From contig OU015567.1 in the NCBI GenBank assembly GCA_907165135.1, positions 13,640,001 to 13,704,000 of the forward strand: DNA of 64,000 nt. The letters are read 5' to 3'. Made by a program: the position numbers and the translations under genes. The DNA is from Oikopleura dioica (Eukaryota; Animalia; Chordata). Positions 17,734-36,687 of this stretch are shown here, piece after piece. Below the pieces are notes generated by a model that saw nothing but the letters and a program-made list of their open reading frames with translations, had not been told where the DNA came from and made no database searches. Within the stretch, counting starts at the first letter, position 1; each line of letters opens with the position of its first letter.

Positions 17734-18187
17734 GTCATTCCTTGCCAGTGGATTAGATTGACGTCCAATCGCCCCTCATGGGAACTTGCCGCAGGCGTTC
17801 ACATTATTTTTGCTCTAAAAAGAAAAATTATTTCAAAACGGTTATCACCTAAAATAAGAGTTTCTTACATTCAGGTACAGTTGGCTAAGATGTCATTGAC
17901 TAAAATAATTTTAGTCACTAAAATCTGTAGGGTAATTAATTTTTCTTCCCTATTTTGTATTTCATGTTTCTCTCACTAAACCCGCCAGATATATTCCCGG
18001 TTTTATCAAAAGTTATGTTTTCACAAATTTTTGAGAGGGGCAAATTTGAAAGCTCGATTTGTCGCTGCTGGTCAATAAATTTCGCATCGTCGCTTATTGG
18101 CGGAGCGAGGGAGGATTTCTTTCAATCTTTGAAGAACAAGAGAAACCAGCCTCGATGCTCCCCTTGAAGAAATAGGAGAAAGGAAAA

Positions 18188-21100
18188 TGGGGATTTTCGT
18201 CAAGTTCCAGCCATGTGAGGAATGCGTTTGTCATTTATATTTATTGATATGAGTACTAAAAAATTTATTTACATTCTTTGATAAACGGATAAACAGAAAA
18301 ACTACGCTGTAATCTTCAAGTACAGCCCACAAATCATCTCAGAAATCAAGAAATTCGGAGCAAAATGGGACGGAACTCACAAAGTCTGGATGATAAGCAA
18401 AGTTATGTGTGGCCGACTTGTCAACTGGCTTCGGCAGAACAATCATAGATTTGAATTCGATCAAAACGAAAAGGTCCTGACCGACAAGACCAACACTGCT
18501 GGAACATCCAAAGCTGCCGGTGACAAAGAAAATCCTGACCAAATTGTCGTTCAAATCATCTTTGTGAAGGGAGAAGAAGGGAGATTCGCTGTTACCTCGG
18601 AAAAGTGGCTCGATAGAGATGCGTACAAATTGTTGATCAACGAAATTTTCAATAAAGTTCGACTCCCGAACGGGCAGCCAGCCGGCTCATATTCAGAAAG
18701 ATGGAGATTCTGGACCTTTCCGTTAGAGGTTTACCACGATTTCATGAATACTTACAAATCAGCGAACATCGCGAAATTGACTGTGAATCCTTTTCCTCCC
18801 CAAGTCACTCGATACCTCCGTCCGAAAACGACAGAAGAAGCCCCTATTACTCCAAATGTTCCAGAAATGCTACTGAAAGCACTTTACCCATTCCAGCGAG
18901 AAGGACTCGAAGAAATAATTCGAAGAAAGGGAAAAGCCATTCTTGCTGATGAAATGGGCCTTGGAAAGACAATTCAAGCTCTGGCAGCAGCGGCTCATTA
19001 TCGAAAAGACTGGCCACTGTTGATCGTTTCCCCAAGCTCAGTTAAGTTCAACTGGCTCGTCGAAATGAACCACTGGATTGGCGAAATCGTCAACAAGGAC
19101 AACATTCAGGTTCTTTACACAGGCAAAGATGTAGAGAAGATTCGCAACAACTTGAAAGTAGTTATTACGAGTTACGAAATGACAACTAAGATCGTCGATA
19201 AAAACAAACACATGACCGACGTTTCAATCTTTTCAGAAGATCAAGTTAGAAGACCCCGGTTCGGGATGGTCATTTTGGACGAAAGTCACTACATCAAATC
19301 GGCAACGGCCAAACGAGCTCAATCCACTAAATGTAAGAGTTCAGTAAATAAAAGTGGTTTTTTAATCTTTTCCAGTACTTTGCAACGGAGCAGCTCGAGT
19401 TCTGTGCCTTTCTGGAACCCCAGCGCTTGCGAAACCGATCGAGCTTCATTCCCAAATCGAAGTTGTCAAAAAAGACCTCTTTCCCAATCGTCACTCATTT
19501 GGCGTGCGATACTGCGCTGCTATCAAAACTAGATATGGATGGAACTATTCTGGCTCCGACAATCTCCCGGAGCTCTCGTTGATTCTTTCAAAGACGATCA
19601 TGATCCGTCGATTGAAAAGCCAAGTGCTCAAAGATCTCCCGCCGAAATTGAGAAAGGTCATTTACATGAAAGTTCCAGAGTCGCGGGAGATGCAAAAGTG
19701 TTACAAAATCTTCGAAGGAATTCAAAAGATTCCCTCGGGCATCACCAAGGCAGATTTCAAACCTGGCGAGTTCGAAAAATTGTCCGACAAGTTCAAAGAA
19801 GCTGATGATTCTCCACTGACGATTTGGAATAAATGGTATTCTGCCACTGGAGACGCGAAGATCAAGTCAATCAGCGGTAAGTTCTTCCTTTTATTTCTCG
19901 ATAAAACAAGTTTCGTAGAATATCTGATTGAAAAGCTCGAAAATGAAAACGAAAAAATCCTCGTCTTTGCTCATCATCGCTCTGTAATCGACAGTTTAGA
20001 GCAGAATCTCTCCCCAAAGATAAAAGGAAATCTCATCAAAATCACTGGCTCGACTAGATCTGACGATAGAACGATGTTTGTTGAAAAATTCCAAAACGAT
20101 GAAAATGTAAAATGTGCCCTCCTGTCAATCACCGCTGTAAATATGGGTAAATCTTCAAGATGAAGTCGATTTGGTAAAAATTTTCTTGCAGGCGTGACTC
20201 TCACAAAAGCCTCGACAGTGGTCTTCGCCGAGCTTCATTACACACCTGGTGTGATGGTCCAGGCAGAGGATCGAGCGCACAGAATCGGGCGCGAGTCAGA
20301 TGTCAATATCGAATATTTGATTGCCAAGAACACGGCCGACGAGTGGATCTGGAGGAATGGGTGTTCATTTTGTTTTTTGAGAATTCTCTAGAATATCTCT
20401 AGAATAGGGCCAAATGTTTGCTGTCGTCAGTTCAGTTGTTCAGTAGTAGACTTCCGTCATGCGAGAACGAAGGAACCGCAGGTCGCGCCGGACTTCAGGT
20501 AAGATTAACCGACTTCCTTCTCAAAATTCTAGCAATTGTTTAGGCCGCGACAATCACTCGCGAAATCGACGTGAATCAAAAACATATTACACCGAAGCGT
20601 CCACAGATGAGACAGAGTACAGTTCAACAGAATATGACACAGAATACACTACTTACGAGTCATCCAGAGAAGTTCGCAGATCAAGCTCACGCCAGTCATT
20701 ACAAAGAACCCCTTCAAGCGCCCATCGAAACCGAAGAAGGTAGGAGCACAAGAAAAAATTGTATCTATCACCATTCAGGAGCGGTTATGGATCGGATAGA
20801 CCAACGCCAAAAGCGCGGAGAAGGCTGAGTTACTCCGACAAGCGTCGTCCTTATCCATCAGGAAATATTGACTATCAAGAATTTGACGAAAACGAGCCTT
20901 GTGTAAAGCGACCGATTTTGACAGAGAAAACACGAATGATTATTCGAAGAGTAGCTCTCGGTAAGCTAATCTTCATCATTTAACCTCCCTAACTCTCGCC
21001 CATCTTCAGCCGTTCTTACAGCTACAGTCGCCGTCTGCATCGTTTGCCTTCTATCTCAATGGAAACGCGCTTATGACAAGCGTCGGAACGCGACTTGGAT

Positions 21101-21773
21101 CGAAAAATCCGAATTCTGGACGGACTACTTCTACAATCAATTCTCTTGCTCTGGTATTGGTATCGCGTCTGTCATTGTTGCATTGATCTTTGTGTGAATA
21201 CTCATTAATAAACTATTTATTTTATTTTTAATAAAAAGTGACTTTTTTTCTTTAAAAAATTGGAAATGAACACCCTTGAAAGTTTGATCCAAAAGAAGTT
21301 AGAAACGCTCAAAGGAGCCGGCTTAGGAAACTCAGCGGTGGAGGAGAAGCATGAGAACCTCAAGCAGGAGGACGAAAATGATGAAGAAAATGACGGATTT
21401 GATGATGACGATGAATTCGATGATATTGTCGCAGAGCTTGATAATGAAGCTAGCTCTGTTCCAGCGCCGGCTCCATCGAACAAGGAATGATTTCAAATTT
21501 GCTTTATTGCGAGAATATAGCGCATCTGATCAGTTTTGAATCCTCTAAAAGCGAAAAAGTGACTCTTCGAACATTCCCGATGCAAAGAAAAAGCTAAGAC
21601 AAAACGAAGCCATTCCAAGTTCAGACACTTGTCAAAATAGTTCAACCGCAGACCAAGAAGTTACAGAGTCCCTGAGCCAGTGTCGAGTTGAAGAAAATTC
21701 CGATAACGAGTTTGAGATAACCGAACCGAAAGATGATACTTTCGATGAAGATCTGCCATCGGATTTTGAATAA
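18188..21773 (+). CDS. SMARCAL1: SMARCAL1/HARP annealing helicase; last two exons lie beyond a 928-nt GA-AG intron
   Basis: Two HARP-like repeats, LYPFQREG...[41 protein letters not shown]. Joining 20354 to 21283 gives [21 protein letters not shown], matching the family motif (human [21 protein letters not shown], from memory). An acidic tail follows intron 21485-21551. Confidence 0.93.
20355..21282 (+). other. Non-canonical GA-AG intron of SMARCAL1 (928 nt) hosting a nested gene
   Basis: Boundaries TGGAG|GAATGG...CCCTTGAAAG|TTTGATC. This junction restores the conserved helicase C-terminal helix in frame. Confidence 0.85.
20459..21197 (+). CDS. Nested 4-exon gene: Arg/Ser/Thr/Tyr-rich N-terminus and two C-terminal hydrophobic segments (about 200 aa)
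   Basis: Three GT-AG introns (20499-20543, 20740-20778, 20961-21009) preserve one reading frame from ATG 20459 to TGA 21195-21197; AATAAA at 21207. Confidence 0.8.
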
Positions 21774-21900
21774 TTTTTCATGGTTGCTAAACCGATTTTT
21801 TCCTGCCACATTACTGATAACAAACTTCACATTTTGATAATTGAAAAGTATTTAATAAAACATCAATTGATATCGATATTTTTCAGATGATAGTTTGTAA

Positions 21901-24900
21901 ATGGAAGATTTCAGTATACATTCAGTCGTAAAGAATTATAATCATGAAGAAATTTGTAGCAATATCACGCCTCTCTTGTCGCCCGCTAGAATTTCAGTAA
22001 TTGGGTACAATCCGCAGCTGAAATGCGCACTCTTATGCTCCAAATATCACTATCATGTGTTGAACCTTGCGAAGAGTGTTGGAGGAAACGAAGCCTACAA
22101 GTTTTCTGATAGGTACCACTAATTTTTACCTTCCTTTGACTCCGACTTGGGGCCTTATTTCTAAGCAATCTAAGTGTTGCTTCAGTGATGTTTGCCGTCG
22201 CGAAAGAACGACGAATTTCGAGCACAAGTTCGACCCTTCCGTTGTCAAATTCAGTAATGAAAAATACTCTGGTCTTTTTGCCACGCTGTGCAAAACTGAA
22301 ATGATTGAAGTCAATCAACTAGTGCCGACATTGAACGAGGAAACTCTGACTCAAAGTTATTCTGTTAGAAGGCTTCTGGCAGAAAATAATCGGCCGATTT
22401 CCCACTCGAGATATGTTAATGACATCGCTTGGTCCAATAAGGGGAATAAGTTGGCTTCAGTTTGCAAGGATTCAAATTTAAAAGTCTGGAGCGTTACTGA
22501 AGACTCGATCAAGCTAGTGAATCGATTCAATACTGTCAGTCAAGCTTCTTTTGTTAGATGGGATACAAAAGTAGGTACTTATGAAAGAAAGATATTTAAA
22601 ATTCTGTCTCTAGGAAAACAACAGACTCGCGACAACAATCGATCGTCAGCTTAAATTTTGGGATCTTCGACAACTGCGCCAAGCATGCGAGTGGTTTTAC
22701 ATGGATGATCAGCGAGCCAACAACATCGCCAAATCCATCGATATTAACGAAAACTATGTTCTATCTTTGATGACCCAAGGAGGCGCGGCGAACAAGCCCG
22801 TTCTCTGTGTCCATGATCGTAGACGCCCGTTGGAAGGTGACACGAGTAAGCGAACGAAAAAGATGAAGCTTTTCTCGACTACTGTTCCTGGCGCGCGGGA
22901 GGCAAGATTCTCTGCCGATGGAAAACATGTGTTGGTTTTGGTCGACGATGGTCGAGATTCCGAAACGACCTTTGCTCACGTGCCAATGGGTCGATCATCG
23001 GCAAACAGTCAATACAGAAGCAGCTCGATAAAAATATTCAGCATCGATGGCCCGCAGCAATCAGCAAATCATAATATTCCGAAACAACCGATTTCTTCCA
23101 TCTCCTCGCAAAGTATGATCATCAATTGGCAACAGATTGTGAATGGAGGTGATGATGGAGATTCTCGCATTATCGGATTCACCAAAGAACTCGATGCTGT
23201 TGATAGAGTCCACCAAATAAACTTCCATCGGTGGAAATACAAACTGACAGATGACGACGACGAAGATATGTTCAAAGATTTTCAAGCCACTTCTGATCTT
23301 GGCAATGAAACGCTTCACGAAAACTCTGAGAATCCTGACAAATCTACAGTTCTTGACGCGTTGCTGAGAGATCTGGAAGGAGAAGTGACATTGATAAGGA
23401 AAAACAATCAGTATGGAATTCAAATCTCCAAAGAAATTGGAGAGGGTGCTGTTGTTGTTAAATTCACAACGAACACGCACGTCAAAGTTTCCCTTCTTGT
23501 GCCAGAAGGTTATCCAAAAAGTGCGATGCCTTCTTTACTTTCTGCAGCGGTCCCCGCTTACACCGCTGATGAGCAAATTGAATTCAAAAAGGATCTCGAG
23601 CAGACGATCAGGATGAAAACTGGGAAATTTGTTTTGGAATCGATTTATATAAAACTATCGGAAGTGGTCCGATCGCTGAGGAACTCAAACTCGGAATCTG
23701 TTGTCTCTGTCAGAAGCGAAGCTCTGAAAGTACCAACAGCGTCTGTGCCTGTTCGACCTGGTCCAGGCCCGACTTTTTCAAAGCATGAAATGAAGAATGC
23801 TCCTTTCCCTGCTCGGTGTGGGACATGCTGGTGTTCAGATAAACTCGTAGTCTGGGCGAATAAGAAAGTTTCTTTTCCGTCCGAATTACCGATCATTCCA
23901 AGCCAGAGTTTCAACATAAAAAGGCATTCAGTCACAGCTGAACACGGCAGAGCCGCGCAAATGCAGGGATTTACGTATCAGTACTTCTTCAATCTCGCCC
24001 AACCGAAGCTTGGAGAATCTACTGATCATTCCCCGAGATCAAGAGTGCCGTATTTGAGAAACATCGGTCTCACACGACAAGGATCAATCGACGGAAGACA
24101 AGTTCAGAATCTTCAAAAATATCCTCCTCTTCGAGTTGAGCTCCACTCAATTGCCCCTCTCACGAATCTGTCCCGTGTTCTTGCGGAGAGATACTCGATT
24201 CCAACAATTTCTGAGAACATGGCGATTATTCAGCCGTCTGAAATCTACAGACTAGATGATGTGTTTCGAATAGAATTGGTCAAGCGCAATTTAGCCGTGG
24301 CTAAGGCCCATATCAAGAGCATCAGCGATGAGTCTTTTGGCTACAGCGTTATTGTCTGGTCGACACTGCGCACCATTCTCCAGTATTGGCAGAATTTCAT
24401 TGAGAAATCAGCTGCTTTGCAGGAAGAAAACTTGTTCAACTTCAAATTTCACTGGCTGCCAAATGCGAGAATGATTATTGAAAAAATAATTCTAACCGGC
24501 GACAAGAAAATTGAAACACAAACCTTGGCAATCCTTGCTTCTTATTTATCTTCCGTCCCGTATTTCGAAGATAACTGGACTCAAGAAATAAATCAAAAGT
24601 CGCTCATTTCGCTATTGAAGCTCTCTCCACCAACTGTGCAAATATTGCACACGCATGTCCAGCAGTACTCAAGAATTCTCGACAGCTGGAAGATGTTTTT
24701 CGAAAGAACAAAGCTTGTTAAGTCTATGTTTGCAGAAACCATGATCCAAAGCCATTTAACCGACAAAGTAAATTGAAATCCCAATGACTTTCTGATAATT
24801 AAAATGAATTTAGTCACGTTTGTCTCCCGCATCTAAAGAAATGAAGTCTTCCCGAAGCTTCCACGACCGAGAACGACAAAATAAAAAGATCACCAAGTAA

Positions 24901-30818: not shown

Positions 30819-33800
30819 ATGGGCTTTGACGAGGATTCGGCCGAGATTCTCAAGGCCCCTGAGCCGAGTAAGGGAGGTCTCGTGGTTAAAAAGAAGAAAG
30901 AGGAAAATGGAACATTCAAAAAACCTTCTGCCTTTGGCCTTGAAGCTCTAGCAGAGAAGAAACGGAAAGAGAGGGAGCGCGAAGAGCGAGAAAAAGACCG
31001 CGATGGAGACAGAAATTACCGACGAAAGCGAATTGAAACTCCTTCAAATACTGGCGGTGTCAGTGACAAGTACTACGAGCGAAGACGCGATCGAGAACGA
31101 AGAGACAAGGATAGAAAAGACTACCAGTCAAGTAGAAATAAAGGATCTCGATACGAAGACTGGGAAGATGACGACAGACGAGATCGAGACCGAAACAGGG
31201 ATCGAGACCGACGGGGAGGCCGATCTGATAGATCAGAACGCGGAAATCGATCGTGGGAAACTCCGACGCCAGGCCGAACACCAAGGGAATCCCCATCACC
31301 TTATATACGGTACTTATTACGAATAAACTGGAAGGTTTGATTGTTATGCTCACTCAGATATTTAGGTCGGACAGGCGCTCTGAGCGGGGCGAAAAAGGAA
31401 CCCCACTTCCAACACCATCGTATAAATACAATGACTGGATGGGGGATAAGAAATTAAACGATCGAGGCAGCGAATCTACCAGGACAACTGAATGGTCAGC
31501 TTCCGAGCTCCGTGAATACGAAGAAGACCAGAAACAAGCAGATCGAGATTGGTACACAATGGATGAAGGAAACGATCCGCACAGAATGGACCCTGACCAG
31601 GAATATGTTGACAAGAAGGAAGATCAACTGAAGAAAAAACGAGAGCCGTTGAGAATGTCGGCAAAGCATCAACAGTACAACATCGACAACGAAAAATGGG
31701 AGGCCGAACTTCTTCTAAGATCCGGTGTTGTTACTCAAACCAATTACGATGAAGATTTTGACGAAACAACTGGTTCAAGGTATGGTCACTTATTTACGCT
31801 ACTTTGTGACGCAGCGATTCCAATTTAGAGTGCATATTTTGGTGCACAATATCATGCCACCGTTTCTCGACGGTCGAACGATCTTCACTAAACAACCGGA
31901 GCCGGTCGTGCCTGTCAAAGGAAAAGGTTCAAAGTTTCGCGCTTGAGCTTCTTTTGGATTTATTTTCTGTATATTCGGGTATTTACAAAAGACACATAAT
32001 TTTGTACAGACGAGTTTGGTTTGGCTTTTTACAGAACGAGGAGAAATTCACGAGTATGGAAGTGTCGTTTTGCTTGGTGGATTCTCATCGATGCTTTTCG
32101 GGCGAATTTCTTGTTGCAAACGGAGCAGGTGTGTTGCTTCTCAATTGCCTGAAAGGAGAGCTCCAAGTTGACTTTTCTGAAGGGACTCTTGAGGATGATC
32201 GGCTTCTCTGGCGCTTTTGGAAGGGCCTCCTCAAGGTTCATCTGGGCAAATTGCTTGTTGAGGCACCGTCGCTTGAGATTTTCGCGTGGTCTGGGGAGCA
32301 TTTTCTTTCGGGGTAAGGTCGAAGTGTGGAGGAGTTCATGAGCAACCTTGGCGGACTCGTGGAAGAATTTCTTCGAGCAGATTTTGCAGTTGTAGATGGG
32401 CTCGTCGGACTTGCACTCATCCTCGAAAGATGGGACGTTTGTAATTTCATTTGGGACTGGATCAGTCGATCTGAGCACTCCAATTGCAATCGTCATTCTC
32501 TGGCTAGCGAAGGATCGGATTTTCTGAGTCTTCTGTCGGTGTCGTCTCTTGACTGGCTGAGCAACGGCGGCTGTCACAGAGTCAGTTTCATTGCCAGAGC
32601 TGTAAATGTTCTTGAGAGATCTTGCAGTGGACTTTGTTCGGTGAAGCTTCTTAGGCATGACTGGCATGTTGATTCTGCTGCTAGATCTCTTTGGAGTCGA
32701 TGACATGAAGCCAGAGAATCCGTTGCCGCAAGAGCCATCGGAAAAAGAGTCGGAATATTCGGAAGAAGTGTTCATCTCTCAGTTTTTAGTTTTGAGTTTT
32801 TAGATTTGATTTTCTTATTGGAAGTCGATGTTTGTCTGAGTTAATCTGCTTCGGGTTCCTATTTATGCCGCCGAAACATTGCGACAACGGCGCCACCAGC
32901 TGAGCGCTAGTCGCAAGGCCGCGTGTGTTCCGATTTTCCGCCGCGCTCAACTGAGCCACCTGCCCGGAGCCGAATCCGGCAGGTGAATCCAATTAGGACC
33001 TGCCGATAGCGACTTCCGATAACCACGTACTCATCCTAACAAGAGTCTTGTTTATAGTAACGCCAAATGACAACGGGGATTGTGATTTCCGGCTCTGACT
33101 GCAAGGAATGTAGTCTTGTTGTCCAACAAAGAGTTGTTTAGACGAAAGTGAATTGAGGGGATTTTGTAATCCCTTTTCAAAAATTAAGTTGCTTGACAAT
33201 AGTGAGATTTACTAAGTGCGTGTCGTTTTTTCGACCTGACAAAAGTGATTTAAGGATCAGAGCAAGTCGTTAAAAGACTTTTTTCATCCCCTTTTGGAAG
33301 GTGAGTGTTTGACTAAGGAGTGGGAAGGATTATCCCTTCAGTTTTTTCTTTGGTGGTAGAATCTTTGATCATCAACGTCTCGTAAAATAGCCAATGCTCA
33401 ATGATATTGATTCCAGTGCACGGATAATCTTCTCATCGAGTTTTAGAGATTCCGAAACCTCCTGTCCAGAAGGCGTAAGCTAAATTTGATCGACTAGGAT
33501 TTACCTCCATTATCCCAAATCAGATTCGTTACGGCCTAGTTTTTGAAACTCTGGCGTGTGAATTCCTGCACCCATCCGTAACCCTTATCAATCGCTCAGC
33601 ACATAATCGTCAGAACAGCGGCACGGATCTTTTTGATTTTGAATTCGCCCGGTGGCGGCATCGTTGAAAAGGTCAATCTTGCGACATTTGCGGTGGCCGT
33701 ACACATTTCCCAAACTAGTTACGCTAGAATCAAAATTGAGCGACAAATTATTCATGCTTCGGCGAGAGCTTGAGAAAGACGAGTTCAATGAGGCAAACTT

Positions 33801-36687
33801 TAACCTTGAAAAGATGCAACGTCGGATATGGCGGTCGTTGCGCGAGAGGGTTCTCACTTGATCAAAAAGCACAGGGAACAAAAAGAGCGCAAAAAGGCGA
33901 TGCACAAAGACTGGGAACTCGCCGGATCAAAGATGGGTCAAGTGCTCGGTGTAAAGAACGCTGAAGATGAAGAGGAACGGGAAGATGACGATACTAACTT
34001 CAAGGTAACCGAGACATTGTGATAAATCTTTTGAATATTATTCGTTAGGCAAACTCGCAATTCAAAGCTCACTTGGACAAGCAGAATCAGAGCGAAGGAG
34101 CGAGTAACTTCTCAAGGACCAAGACCATTCGTGAACAACGAGAGTTCTTACCCATTTACGCCTCACGCGCTGAGCTGATGAAGGACAGGATTGATTTGTT
34201 CTGCGTTATTAGTAATTCCCTCGGTGCACGCACTCGAGCATGCCCGGATTTTATTTATCACAGAAGCTGTCAAAAATATCCTAAACAAAGTTGATCCGAG
34301 AGAACTCGGTTGTCGTCATTGTTGGAGAGACGGGATCGGGAAAAACCACTCAACTCGTGCAATATTTGATGGAAGAGGGATACGGAGGTATATTTAGCCC
34401 ATCTTTATTAAAGTAATCATCCTTTTTTCAAGAAAGGGGAATGATTGGGTGTACTCAGCCTCGTCGAGTCGCTGCCATGTCCGTTGCGAAGCGAGTTTCA
34501 GATGAAATCGGTGTGGAGCTTGGCCAAGAAGTCGGTTACGCCATCCGTTTCGAAGATTGTACCTCCAAAAAGACCGTGATCAAGTACATGACTGATGGTA
34601 TCCTCCTTCGAGAGACTTTGCGCGAGTCTGACATTGATCACTACTCCTGCATCGTCATGGACGAGGCTCACGAGAGATCCCTGAACACAGACGTCCTCTT
34701 TGGTATTTTACGAGATGTTGTCGCTAGAAGAAATGACTTGAAACTGATTGTTACATCCGCTACCATGGACGCCGGAAAATTCTCCGACTTCTTCGGCGGT
34801 GTTCCAATCTACAAAATTCCTGGAAGAACTTTCCCCGTAGATGTACTCTGGGCGAAATCGACAGTGGAGGATTACGTCGAATCCACTGTGAAACAGGCAC
34901 TTCAGGTGCACCTGTCCATGGACGAAGGCGATATCTTGATCTTCATGCCGGGTCAAGAGGCTATCGAAGTGACCTGTGACGAAATCCGCACGCGACTGGA
35001 TGAGGTAGACGAGTCACCTGCGCTCGCCATCTTGCCGATTTACTCTCAATTGCCGTCGGATCTTCAGTCCAAGATCTTCGAAAAAGCCCCTGAGGGTTGC
35101 CGAAAATGTGTCGTCGCCACTAATATTGCTGAAACATCCCTTACTCTTGACGGTATCAAATATGTGATCGACGCTGGATATTGCAAACTCAAAGTGTTCA
35201 ACCCAAAAATTGGTATGGACTCGTTGCAAGTCTACCCGATCTCGCAGGCTAATGCCAATCAGAGGTCAGGTCGAGCAGGTCGAACTGGCGCCGGCACTGC
35301 CTTTAGATTATACACGCTCTCCCAGTACAAGTCCGAAATGTTGCTCACAACTGTCCCTGAAATTCAGCGAACCAACTTGTCGAACGTTGTTTTGCTTCTA
35401 AAATCTTTGAATGTTGATGATCTCCTCAAATTTCACTTCATGGATCCTCCTCCACAGGTTTTGAGAATTTCAATTCTTACTGATTACCATTATTTTTAAG
35501 GATAACATGTTGAACTCAATGTACTCGTTATGGATCCTTAACGCTCTTGATAACACTGGCAAACTCACGGATAAAGGACGACTGATGGTCGAGTTCCCCA
35601 TGGATCCAGCCATGTCGAAAATGTTGATTACTTCTTGTGACATGGGCTGTTCTGAAGAAATGCTGACAATTGTCTCCATGCTTTCTGTGCCAACGATTTT
35701 CTTCAGACCAAGAGGTCGAGAAGAGGATGCAGGTAATTTAGAGTTGGTGTATTCTCGTGATTATTTTTTCGAATAGACACGATGCGGGAGAAGTTCAACG
35801 TCCCTGAATCCGACCACATGACATACTTGAATGTCTACTCACAATGGAAGAAGCATGGGTACAAAGATACATGGTGTACGAAGCATTTTATTCACGCGAA
35901 GGCGATGCGCAAAGTCCGTGAGGTTCGAAGCCAGCTCAAGGAAATCATGGACTCGCAAAAACTCACGCTTACCTCCTGCGGCGCGGCGTGGGATATCGTC
36001 CGGAAGTGCATCTGTGCAGCCTATTTTCACGCCGCGGCGAAGCTGAAAGGTATTCGCGGTATTTTTGCATTTTACAACGCGCTATTTAGGTCTCTCTGAA
36101 TATGTGAACATTCGGACTGGTATGCCGTGTCATCTTCATCCCACTTCCGCTCTCTATGGAATGGGATATGCTTCCGACTATGTCGTCTACCACGAGCTGA
36201 TTATGACATCAAAGGAATTCATGCATGTCGCTACGGCTGTTGAGGGAGAATGGCTTGCTGAACTTGGCCCTATGTTTTACTCAATCAAGAAGAGCTCGAA
36301 GGTAAGAAAAACTTATTTAATTTTGAAGACTTTATATCGTATTCAAGAGTCGCCGTGAAGCTGCATCAAAGACAATGTCCAACCTCGAAGCTATGGATGC
36401 TCAGTTCCACAAAGACAAGGAACTAATGGACAAACGAAAAGCCGCTGAAGAAGCATTCAAAAAGGTCAATAAACAAATCAGTTCTAAATTGTTTATAATC
36501 GGTTTAGCCTTCGTTGACATCAGTGCGGATCGCGATGCCAGGTGCGCCGACTCCAAAGAGAGAGCGCGCGCTCACTGAGCCCGTGAAGCGTCCAGCCTCG
36601 CCCATGTCAAGAATAGAAGAATTCCGCCGGAAGAAGGAGGCACGAACGCCTCTTGGCCGGCCACGAACCCCAAGAATGGGACTATAA
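30819..36687 (+). CDS. DHX38: Pre-mRNA splicing DEAH helicase PRP16, multi-exon, with a 1.9-kb intron
   Basis: [23 protein letters not shown]|[52 protein letters not shown]; ends RTPRMGL*. Confidence 0.96.
31921..33813 (+). other. Non-canonical GA-AG intron of DHX38 (1893 nt) containing an antisense gene
   Basis: GTCAAAG|GAAAAG...ACCTTGAAAAG|ATGCAACG restores PVKDATSD, which is conserved in PRP16 orthologs. Confidence 0.88.
32029..32775 (-). CDS. Intronless C2H2 zinc-finger protein (2 fingers, 248 aa) nested antisense in the DHX38 intron
   Basis: [21 protein letters not shown] and [22 protein letters not shown] in one ORF. Confidence 0.85.
   Translation of the reverse strand: MNTSSEYSDSFSDGSCGNGFSGFMSSTPKRSSSRINMPVMPKKLHRTKSTARSLKNIYSSGNETDSVTAAVAQPVKRRHRQKTQKIRSFASQRMTIAIGVLRSTDPVPNEITNVPSFEDECKSDEPIYNCKICSKKFFHESAKVAHELLHTSTLPRKKMLPRPRENLKRRCLNKQFAQMNLEEALPKAPEKPIILKSPFRKVNLELSFQAIEKQHTCSVCNKKFARKASMRIHQAKRHFHTREFLLVL
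34184..34290 (+). other. Second GA-AG intron in DHX38 (107 nt)
   Basis: ATGAAG|GACAGG...AAACAAAG|TTGATC gives [23 protein letters not shown]. Confidence 0.85.

Follow-up and report, generated by a model that had tools for sequence, protein, structure and literature searches.

A complete gene nested in a GA-AG intron of the Oikopleura dioica SMARCAL1 orthologue, with complementary intron ends

Host and nested gene at the locus

The window is the whole analysed stretch of DNA, 64 kb of the Oikopleura dioica assembly OKI2018_I69, which is the source of the SMARCAL1 orthologue studied here. The features of the locus are collected in Table 1. Homology searches were run exon by exon, with each exon as its own query, and the best named homologues of the host exons were SMARCAL1. 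Pfam places PF00176 (SNF2-rel_dom) on exons 2 and 3 and PF00271 (Helicase_C) on exons 4 and 5, and both lobes of an SNF2-type ATPase are therefore present, namely the SNF2-related N lobe and Helicase_C. Pfam HARP (PF07443) has no match to exon 2 at E ≤ 0.1; the best homologues carry HARP, and the closest relatives also align across this stretch. The C-terminal motif W-x-L(I/L)xxKLxxLxxxGL, located after helicase motif VI, is present in the host, as found by a tblastn search of the window with P0013 and P0014. A sub-threshold Rfam match to snoZ247 across an acidic coding repeat was taken as spurious.

The host gene has three GA-AG introns, and introns 1 and 6 are also conserved between lineages. 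At intron 1, the phase of the GT at 18215 does not fit the sole usable acceptor. SMARCAL1 continues beyond 21490, the conserved GA-AG intron 6 leading into a seventh exon. The interpretation of exon 6 as an independent open reading frame was rejected, as the sister lineage L095 lacks the in-frame ATG at 21266.

Table 1. Features of the SMARCAL1 locus and of the gene nested in its fifth intron (positions in the window; a slash in a sequence motif marks the splice site)
Feature	Position	Strand	Remarks
SMARCAL1 exon 1	18187–18219	+	11 codons; ATG and reading kept in L008 and L095
Host intron 1, GA-AG, 77 nt	18220–18296	+	(G or A)AG/GA in three lineages
Host exon 2	18297–19332	+	HARP-like region and first part of SNF2 ATPase; Pfam, homologues
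Host exon 3	19376–19876	+	Pfam, homologues
Host exon 4	19919–20146	+	Helicase_C
Host exon 5	20192–20354	+	end of Helicase_C; terminates ...EWIW + AG
Host intron 5, 928 nt	20355–21282	+	GA donor (AG/GAATGG), AAAG acceptor; contains the nested gene
Helix 5' arm	20359–20383	+	perfect core 20359–20370; includes rival GT donor 20361–62
Two TCTAGA elements	20387–20403 (20387–92, 20398–403)	+	T-rich surroundings; candidate core promoter for the nested gene, male-germline type
Nested gene, coding exon 1	20459–20498	+	start codon 20459
Nested gene, exon 2	20544–20739	+	conserved coding
Nested gene, exon 3	20779–20960	+	conserved coding
Nested gene, exon 4	21010–21197	+	two hydrophobic segments; stop 21195–97
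Nested gene, two AATAAA signals	21207–21235	+	at 21207–12 and 21230–35; both kept in L095
Helix 3' arm	21248–21275	+	perfect core 21264–21275; stops 7 nt before acceptor
Host exon 6	21283–21484	+	15-residue C-terminal SMARCAL1 motif and acidic tail
Host intron 6, GA-AG, 67 nt	21485–21551	+	AAG/GAATGA; conserved
Host exon 7	21552–21773	+	73 codons and stop; conserved in L095; no own ATG
AATAAA candidate for host mRNA	21854–21859	+	motif

Intron 5 holds a second gene on the same strand as its host, with four exons encoding 201 aa, three GT-AG introns (45, 39 and 49 nt) and two AATAAA signals. The host donor and the nested ATG are 104 nt apart, and the nested stop codon and the host acceptor 85 nt. 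The initial annotation had placed a complete multi-exon gene, co-oriented with its host, within a GA-AG intron of SMARCAL1, and every coordinate holds. Its claim that host transcripts must traverse the nested gene's splice sites and poly(A) signals follows from the confirmed nesting.

Between lineages, the DNA identity of the nested exons is 83–85%, compared with 36–56% for the nested introns. The exons are under strong purifying selection, with a dN/dS of about 0.05 (pN 0.051 versus pS 0.557). The product is a small membrane protein with two C-terminal hydrophobic segments. Its relatives show 57–62% identity and the same C-terminus, and some of them occur in poly(A)+ transcripts. Matches to the protein family come from appendicularian-like sequences only, and neither Pfam nor the ESM Atlas assigned a family to the protein.

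The initial annotation had proposed a comparison of synteny in other lineages and had raised the matter of misassembly. The comparison was run, and the nesting is present in three O. dioica-like lineages. The order of host exon 5, nested exons 1 to 4 and host exon 6 recurs in two lineages besides the present one on independent ENA, JGI and Logan contigs, which argues against a misassembly. Judged from these contigs, the pair of genes is kept in at least three diverged O. dioica lineages. Because the same order is found in independent assemblies and exons and introns contrast in their conservation, the nesting is neither an assembly error nor chance. In more distant appendicularians, homologues of the nested gene are located elsewhere, as free-standing genes. 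A scan of JGI metagenomes with host exon 6 gave no match, and the same scan with host exon 5 gave distant SNF2 genes only (best identity 68%). Intron-nested genes have been listed as a trait of compact genomes such as that of O. dioica (bioRxiv 10.64898/2025.12.04.692336).

In the public annotation, the locus appears as CAG5113731.1, an 881-aa fusion of host and nested gene that misses the three GA-AG introns. The existence of this model is what speaks for a single gene at the locus, either the fusion itself or a SMARCAL1 truncated at 20391 with exon 6 as a relic. Such a reading is scarcely credible. The fusion model reads nested exon 1 out of frame and omits both the invariant C-terminal segment of the nested gene's family and the conserved 11-residue SMARCAL1 motif. 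The read-through tail past 20354 differs among lineages, and exons 6 and 7 remain open with in-frame indels only, exon 6 being without an ATG of its own in L095. The truncated SMARCAL1 and the fusion protein were both rejected on these grounds of frame, lost conserved motifs, divergent tail and open exons. Any gene count, orthology table or SMARCAL1 comparison derived from the public model is affected by its chimeric nature and by the lack of the three introns.

Borders and complementary ends of intron 5

Exon 5 ends with ...TGG AG at 20354, GA occupies positions 20355–56, and the first base of exon 6 is 21283. Across the intron, the split codon AG/T gives Ser, followed by the 15 residues of the SMARCAL1 C-terminal motif, and upstream of 21283 no alternative AG leaves the frame open. 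In the homologues, the alignment runs as far as the W at 20352 and restarts at the L at 21284, which leaves exactly one intervening residue. An orthologue from an outgroup is interrupted by an intron at this position as well, there with the canonical donor TGGAG/GT, and two other O. dioica lineages have the GA donor here. GA-AG introns of O. dioica were reportedly described by Denoeud et al. in 2010. The published donor consensus of these introns is AG/GAA (Frey and Pucker 2020, PMC7072748). On the evidence of sequence, intron 5 is a genuine spliceosomal intron of the SMARCAL1 orthologue with a GA donor of the known AG/GAA class.

The intron could instead be canonical, with a GT donor at 20361 and the AG at 21282, or it could use GA and GT as alternative donors 6 nt apart. 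This GT is in phase 2, lies 6 nt downstream of the GA and is conserved in all lineages; the public gene model also takes it, but pairs it with another acceptor. Its use would give W-RNG-L, two residues beyond the W-S-L of the GA reading, whereas the homologues leave room for one. The outgroup donor is at the GA position, with no GT 6 nt downstream. Furthermore, GG/GTGTTC at 20361 is a poor donor while AG/GAATGG fits the published GA class, and the GT sits within the 5' arm of the helix described below. Use of the GT is consequently regarded as quite improbable, and homology spacing, the outgroup AG/GT position and the AG/GAA consensus favour GA. The initial annotation had stated that SMARCAL1 can be completed only through a GA donor. 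Its GA-AG reading is borne out by homology, outgroup and consensus, but the word "only" has to be given up in view of the in-frame GT.

The two ends of intron 5 are complementary and could pair into a helix of about 25 bp, whose 12-bp core, a 12-nt inverted repeat, is perfect; this feature is described here as new. Its arms flank the candidate promoter and the poly(A) signals of the nested gene from outside. The end-to-end duplex has an energy of −26.1 kcal/mol, to which A-run/U-run pairing contributes a part; this value was reached by 0 of 2000 shuffles and places the intron within the top 0.9% of genomic pairs at equal spacing. Folding of the entire intron places the helix in the MFE structure and in the centroid structure alike. 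The complementarity of the intron ends thus exceeds the chance level. The same layout of end pairing occurs in the gene-bearing GA-AG introns of PRP16 (−25 kcal/mol, top 1.4%) and MANBA/ALG8 (perfect 12 bp). The arm sequences of these three gene-bearing introns differ and their layout is common. The end pairing of the short GA-AG introns of SMARCAL1 is not unusual, and a simple ungapped repeat search of ribosomal-protein introns gave no clear terminal helix.

The inverted repeat may have no role in RNA. It could be due to chance or be left over from the DNA event by which the nested gene was inserted, such as mobile-element ends, with the host intron being spliced unaided. This explanation is considered unlikely, although it draws on the comparison with L095, in which the helix is weaker (−14.4 kcal/mol, z −1.8) with a 7-bp core kept and one mismatch. 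No compensatory changes were found in L095, the sole lineage in which both arms are comparable; in the third lineage, the 3' arm of the intron is absent from the contigs examined. The first 15 nt of the intron are conserved, possibly on account of the donor or the promoter context and not of the helix. On the other side, neither arm sequence recurs in the 64-Mb genome or belongs to a repeat family, the outgroup intron at the same site indicates that there the intron is older than the nested gene, and the three gene-bearing GA-AG introns share their layout despite unlike arms. Transposon ends were rejected as the origin of the arms on account of this uniqueness. Near-matches to the 5' pattern in the genome are about twice as frequent as in the control and consist of unrelated small repeats, and those to the 3' pattern are at control level.

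Expression of the two genes

Same-strand nesting poses a problem, since the nested gene needs splice sites and poly(A) signals which the host has to ignore. Of the 9 occurrences of TCTAGA in the window, 2 are found within the 104 nt before the nested ATG. The TCTAGA-to-ATG distance of 59–61 nt is kept in other lineages, and homologues of the nested gene in three other species have TCTAGA 68–99 nt before the ATG. TCTAGA is the male-specific (male-germline) core promoter of O. dioica, T-rich and with a sharp transcription start site (TSS) 40–50 nt downstream (Danks et al. 2018, PMC6389100). The nested gene shows the motif, the T-rich context and a conserved spacing to the ATG that is compatible with this promoter class. 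The motif by itself is no proof of a promoter, and the element is regarded as a candidate.

In the proposed mechanism, the nested gene would be transcribed from its own intronic promoter, the conserved TCTAGA element. The predicted TSS lies at about 20438–20448, 40–50 nt past TCTAGA, which would produce a short leader, and the transcript would terminate at the gene's own AATAAA signals. Host transcripts would start upstream and carry both arms of the helix. The helix would start 4 nt past the GA donor and stop 7 nt short of the acceptor. It would juxtapose the weak GA donor and the proper acceptor, sequester the in-frame decoy GT at 20361, and place the nested gene, including its splice sites and poly(A) signals, in a loop. 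Transcripts from the nested promoter would be devoid of the 5' arm and would undergo ordinary splicing and polyadenylation. The arrangement would then act as a switch, in which only transcripts from the host promoter hold both arms and yield host mRNA, while those from the nested promoter yield nested mRNA. We infer the intron 5 junction, the TSS of the nested gene and its male-specific expression from the DNA itself; the searches gave no transcript from this lineage or a near one.

Alternatively, the two mRNAs may be alternative products of one precursor, with SL trans-splicing just upstream of 20459 and cleavage at 21207/21230 freeing the nested mRNA, and GA...AG cis-splicing giving that of the host. 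A conserved AG/A (GTAG/A, 20447–20450) is located 9 nt before the nested ATG. It matches the published form of a trans-splice acceptor, in which A usually comes after the AG, and such an acceptor can also be provided by the AGA within TCTAGA (PMC6389100). In another appendicularian, moreover, a poly(A)+ polycistronic contig has a homologue of the nested gene as its final cistron. However, with a donor 95 nt upstream, the AG/A before the nested ATG does not count as "unpaired", and the TCTAGA promoter with its conserved spacing is a documented alternative to SL trans-splicing. The searches yielded no SL-bearing sequence. The SL model is possibly valid only outside the male germ line. A shared precursor is distinctly unlikely as the explanation for both mRNAs, and the nested gene's own TCTAGA promoter seems better supported, although the two could coexist, as has been published for internal operon genes. 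Since TCTAGA with fitting conserved spacing points to a separate promoter, the host and nested mRNAs would for the most part not be competing outputs of one transcript.

As a whole explanation, a GA-AG intron containing a complete nested gene, a TCTAGA promoter belonging to that gene, and helix-assisted splicing of the host is assigned a probability of about 0.6. The broader proposal that O. dioica has a class of long gene-bearing GA-AG introns, with ends clamped by a helix as a promoter-dependent switch, is tentative and rather doubtful. If the switch is true, the weak GA donor would be selected precisely because its splicing needs the help of the helix. The locus, which is shorter than 1 kb and conserved between cryptic species, offers a testable answer based on RNA structure to the problem of same-strand nesting. 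It may also help to explain the retention of many GA donors in O. dioica.

Comparison with known systems

SL-resolved operons of O. dioica are said to have been described by Ganot et al. in 2004. These operons likewise contain co-oriented genes tens of bases apart (PMC6883708), and the homologue of the nested gene found elsewhere is a terminal cistron. At the present locus, exons of a single host gene lie on either side of the nested gene, and consequently operon-style resolution would destroy the host mRNA. Host/nested gene pairs of animals, as in a mammalian survey (bioRxiv 10.1101/2023.05.02.539096), resemble this locus in having a complete gene with its own signals in a host intron. The present pair differs from them in its same-strand orientation, the intron of less than 1 kb, the GA donor, the gaps of 104 nt and 85 nt, and the complementary intron ends.

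With the GA-AG introns of O. dioica (PMC7072748), intron 5 has in common the AG/GAA donor context and the AG acceptor. However, most introns of this species are about 50 nt long, whereas intron 5 has 928 nt, a gene inside it and a terminal helix. The features in common with TCTAGA promoters (PMC6389100) are the motif, the T-rich context, the short-leader spacing and the internal position in a longer transcription unit. The published cases include cryptic internal operon promoters between cistrons, while here the element is located inside an intron of another gene and its use is suggested by sequence.

Long-range pairing, including that of intron ends, aids splicing or suppresses intronic polyadenylation (PMC8052449; PMC12621601). 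In human conserved complementary regions (PMC8052449) and in euglenozoan non-canonical introns with paired ends (PMC12621601), a helix likewise joins the 5' and 3' ends, and the enclosure of poly(A) sites by the helix is a further likeness. In contrast to these systems, intron 5 of SMARCAL1 has spliceosome-like GA-AG borders, carries a gene in the loop, and has its arms placed outside the candidate promoter and the poly(A) signals of that gene.

Anatomy of the host and nested genes

The host gene carries SNF2-related and Helicase_C domains (Pfam) on four collinear exons of the + strand, and SMARCAL1 proteins are the best named homologues of its exons in a homologue search. Its exon model was drawn by reading the sequence, and each exon of the host and of the lodger, the gene nested in host intron 5 (20355-21282), was searched singly.

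Coding features of the SMARCAL1 host and of the lodger
Feature	Position	Strand	Remark
Host e1	18187-18219	+	
Host e2	18297-19332	+	
Host e3	19376-19876	+	
Host e4	19919-20146	+	
Host e5	20192-20354	+	
Host e6	21283-21484	+	
Host e7	21552-21773	+	absent from public annotation
Lodger exon 1	20459-20498	+	
Lodger exon 2	20544-20739	+	
Lodger exon 3	20779-20960	+	
Lodger exon 4	21010-21197	+	

Host introns 2-4 are GT-AG introns of 42-45 nt, and introns 1, 5 and 6 open with GA after AG. Intron 1 (18220-18296) reads (G/A)AG/GA in three lineages (the last slash marks the junction), its neighbouring GT being out of phase. Intron 6 (21485-21551), like intron 1 conserved between lineages, has the donor AAG/GAATGA and is required because e7 would otherwise be out of reach; this segment shows protein-level conservation in the sister lineage, with indels solely in multiples of three, and has no ATG of its own. 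The SMARCAL1 model of the initial annotation was consequently one exon short at its 3' end. A sub-threshold match to the plant C/D snoRNA snoZ247 (Rfam, 21395-21541, 36.5 bits against a cut-off of 38) takes in both intron 6 and the acidic, GATGA-rich coding repeat, and is probably spurious. About 130 nt past e7 begins a co-oriented WD40 and RWD-like gene (WDR59-like, 21901-24776), an order kept in contigs L095 and L096 of the sister lineage.

The lodger proved to be, as first described, an intact co-oriented gene with three GT-AG introns (45, 39 and 49 nt) and its own AATAAA (21207 and 21230), its coordinates giving 201 codons. It is single-copy in the 64,281,565-bp assembly (19 pieces). Exon-by-exon searches of Pfam and Atlas returned no relative of the protein. 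Exon 4 alone matched four protein clusters among 1.84 billion representatives at 57-61% identity, each match extending to the C-terminus. Marine transcript catalogues or poly(A)+ contigs yielded two full-length relatives (203-207 aa). Members of the family share a PYP(A/S)G motif and a basic juxtamembrane stretch, together with two hydrophobic segments and a C-terminus that hardly varies. Host e5 (AG at 20353-54) and lodger exon 2 share a phase-2 end in AG, so a hypothetical splice from host e5 to lodger exon 3 (starting at 20779) would be in frame and would yield a membrane-anchored SMARCAL1 fusion.

Conservation, age and the public gene model

A query with the exon-5 ORF retrieved contigs L095-L099 (ENA, JGI, Logan) of a diverged O. 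dioica-like lineage, with host identity of 70% in e2 and 98% in e5. The order there is host e5, lodger exons 1-4 and host e6, and the downstream WD40 gene is syntenic too; contigs L109 and L110 of a third, closer lineage have the same arrangement as far as their ends. The synteny check proposed in the initial annotation thus places the nesting in two further O. dioica-like lineages. Between the window and L095, DNA identity is 83-85% in lodger exons and 36-56% in lodger introns. The lodger has pN 0.051 and pS 0.557 (180 codons), and host synonymous sites are saturated (0.77). Both genes are under selection, and the nested anatomy and its conservation are established. pS is lower in host e5 and the nested exons (0.52-0.62) than in other host exons (0.76-0.87), a difference that RNA-level constraint or codon bias could explain.

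More distant relatives have the lodger homologue at another location, with no SMARCAL1 exon nearby. One such homologue, from another appendicularian, is the final ORF on a polycistronic poly(A)+ contig from a metatranscriptome (L003, 1-5455); ribophorin II, a short ORF and a WD40 protein come before it, and TCTAGA lies within the last intercistronic gap. The outgroup SMARCAL1 intron holds no lodger within its first kilobase, and therefore the intron predates the tenancy.

The public model, NCBI CAG5113731.1 (Oidioi.mRNA.OKI2018_I69.chr2.g7821, 881 aa), matches window exons at 100% (18390-21490) and is built solely from canonical splice sites. It begins within host exon 2, lacks host exons 1 and 7, joins the GT at 20361 to a TCTAG acceptor at 20402, translates lodger exon 1 in a wrong frame, continues through lodger exons 2-4 up to 21155, and then leaps to 21317 in host exon 6. 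It loses conserved segments of SMARCAL1 and of the lodger protein; therefore, it is rejected as a real single gene and is a SMARCAL1/lodger chimera.

Probable lodger promoter and host splice donor

Two TCTAGA copies (20387, 20398) lie in a T-rich context within the 104 nt from the host donor to the lodger ATG; the whole 64-kb window holds only 9, against 18 expected. In O. dioica this motif is the core promoter element of >70% of male-specific transcription, precedes a sharp start site by 40-50 nt, and also powers cryptic internal operon promoters, often excluding the trans-splice site (PMC6389100). It stands 59-61 nt upstream of the lodger ATG in all three lineages, and 68, 70 and 99 nt upstream of the putative ATG in homologues from three other species. 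Because of this conservation and the published properties of TCTAGA, the lodger appears to have its own male-germline promoter, with a predicted start near 20438-20448. Given a conserved AG/A nine bases upstream of the ATG, release of the lodger mRNA from the host precursor by SL trans-splicing, as initially proposed, might also occur, with cells other than the male germ line the most plausible setting.

At the host junction, insect SMARCAL1 alignments reach W at 20352 and restart at L 21284 with exactly one residue between, which the split codon AG/T provides; 21281-82 is the sole AG opening the exon-6 frame. The earlier claim that SMARCAL1 can be completed only by a GA donor was overstated, since the GT at 20361 shares phase 2 and its use would lengthen the protein by two residues. 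The GA donor is nevertheless favoured on four grounds. It fits gapless SMARCAL1 homology and the GA class published for O. dioica, in which GA follows a conserved AG and precedes an A (PMC7072748); the outgroup intron (L100-L102, exon 5 79% identical) starts TGGAG/GT exactly at the GA position, with no GT six bases on; and the same gene has two other GA-AG introns.

Of five GA donors inspected, three have an in-frame GT exactly 6 nt past GA (AG/GAnnnnGT; at 18226, 20361 and 31927). This GT is kept in three lineages at host intron 1 and absent from host intron 6 and MANBA; its recurrence may be due to chance (a rough binomial gives ~0.002) or reflect a shifted U1 register.

A predicted helix between the intron ends

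At opposite ends of intron 5, GGGTGTTCATTT (20359-70) pairs perfectly with AAATGAACACCC (21264-75), and the helix extends to ~25 bp (20359-20383 with 21248-21275). Pairing of the 40 nt at one end with the 40 nt at the other has an energy of -26.1 kcal/mol, a value reached by 0/2000 shuffles and by just 0.9% of genomic pairs at equal spacing. This helix closes the intron in the MFE fold as well as in the centroid fold, and its arms are unique in the genome. The rival GT donor sits within the 5' arm. That arm precedes the TCTAGA elements, and the 3' arm follows both AATAAA signals. In L095 the helix is reduced to a 7-bp core (-14.4 kcal/mol, z -1.8), and comparison of its arms with those of the window revealed no compensatory change. 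This poor retention is where the helix hypothesis is weakest. A 6-bp exon-exon complement (TGGATC at 20344-20349, GATCCA at 21286-21291) flanks both splice sites and is present in the MFE fold; one change breaks it in L095.

As an independent test of the helix, two further gene-bearing introns were compared. The ends of the PRP16/DHX38 GA-AG intron (31921-33813) are complementary over ~30 bp interrupted by bulges; the energy, -25 kcal/mol, ranks within the top 1.4% of genomic pairs. The junction of this intron, PVK/DATSD, is presumably consistent with human DHX38. The acceptor contexts are alike, CCTTGAAAAG in PRP16 and CCCTTGAAAG in SMARCAL1. In the MANBA intron holding ALG8 (L107 2956-4925; G000:C1:1249455-1251424), an inverted repeat of 12 bp without mismatch, GGCTCATGATTT and AAATCATGAGCC, lies a few bases inside the AG/GA and AG sites flanking ALG8.

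From these features, host and lodger would use separate promoters, and the helix would assist host splicing across the lodger. It may also mask the decoy GT, and perhaps sequence 3' of the second poly(A) signal as well. The proposed helix resembles a published hypothesis in which long-range pairing saves introns from premature polyadenylation (PMC8052449), and host intron 5 is similar in its paired ends to the non-canonical introns of euglenozoans (PMC12621601).
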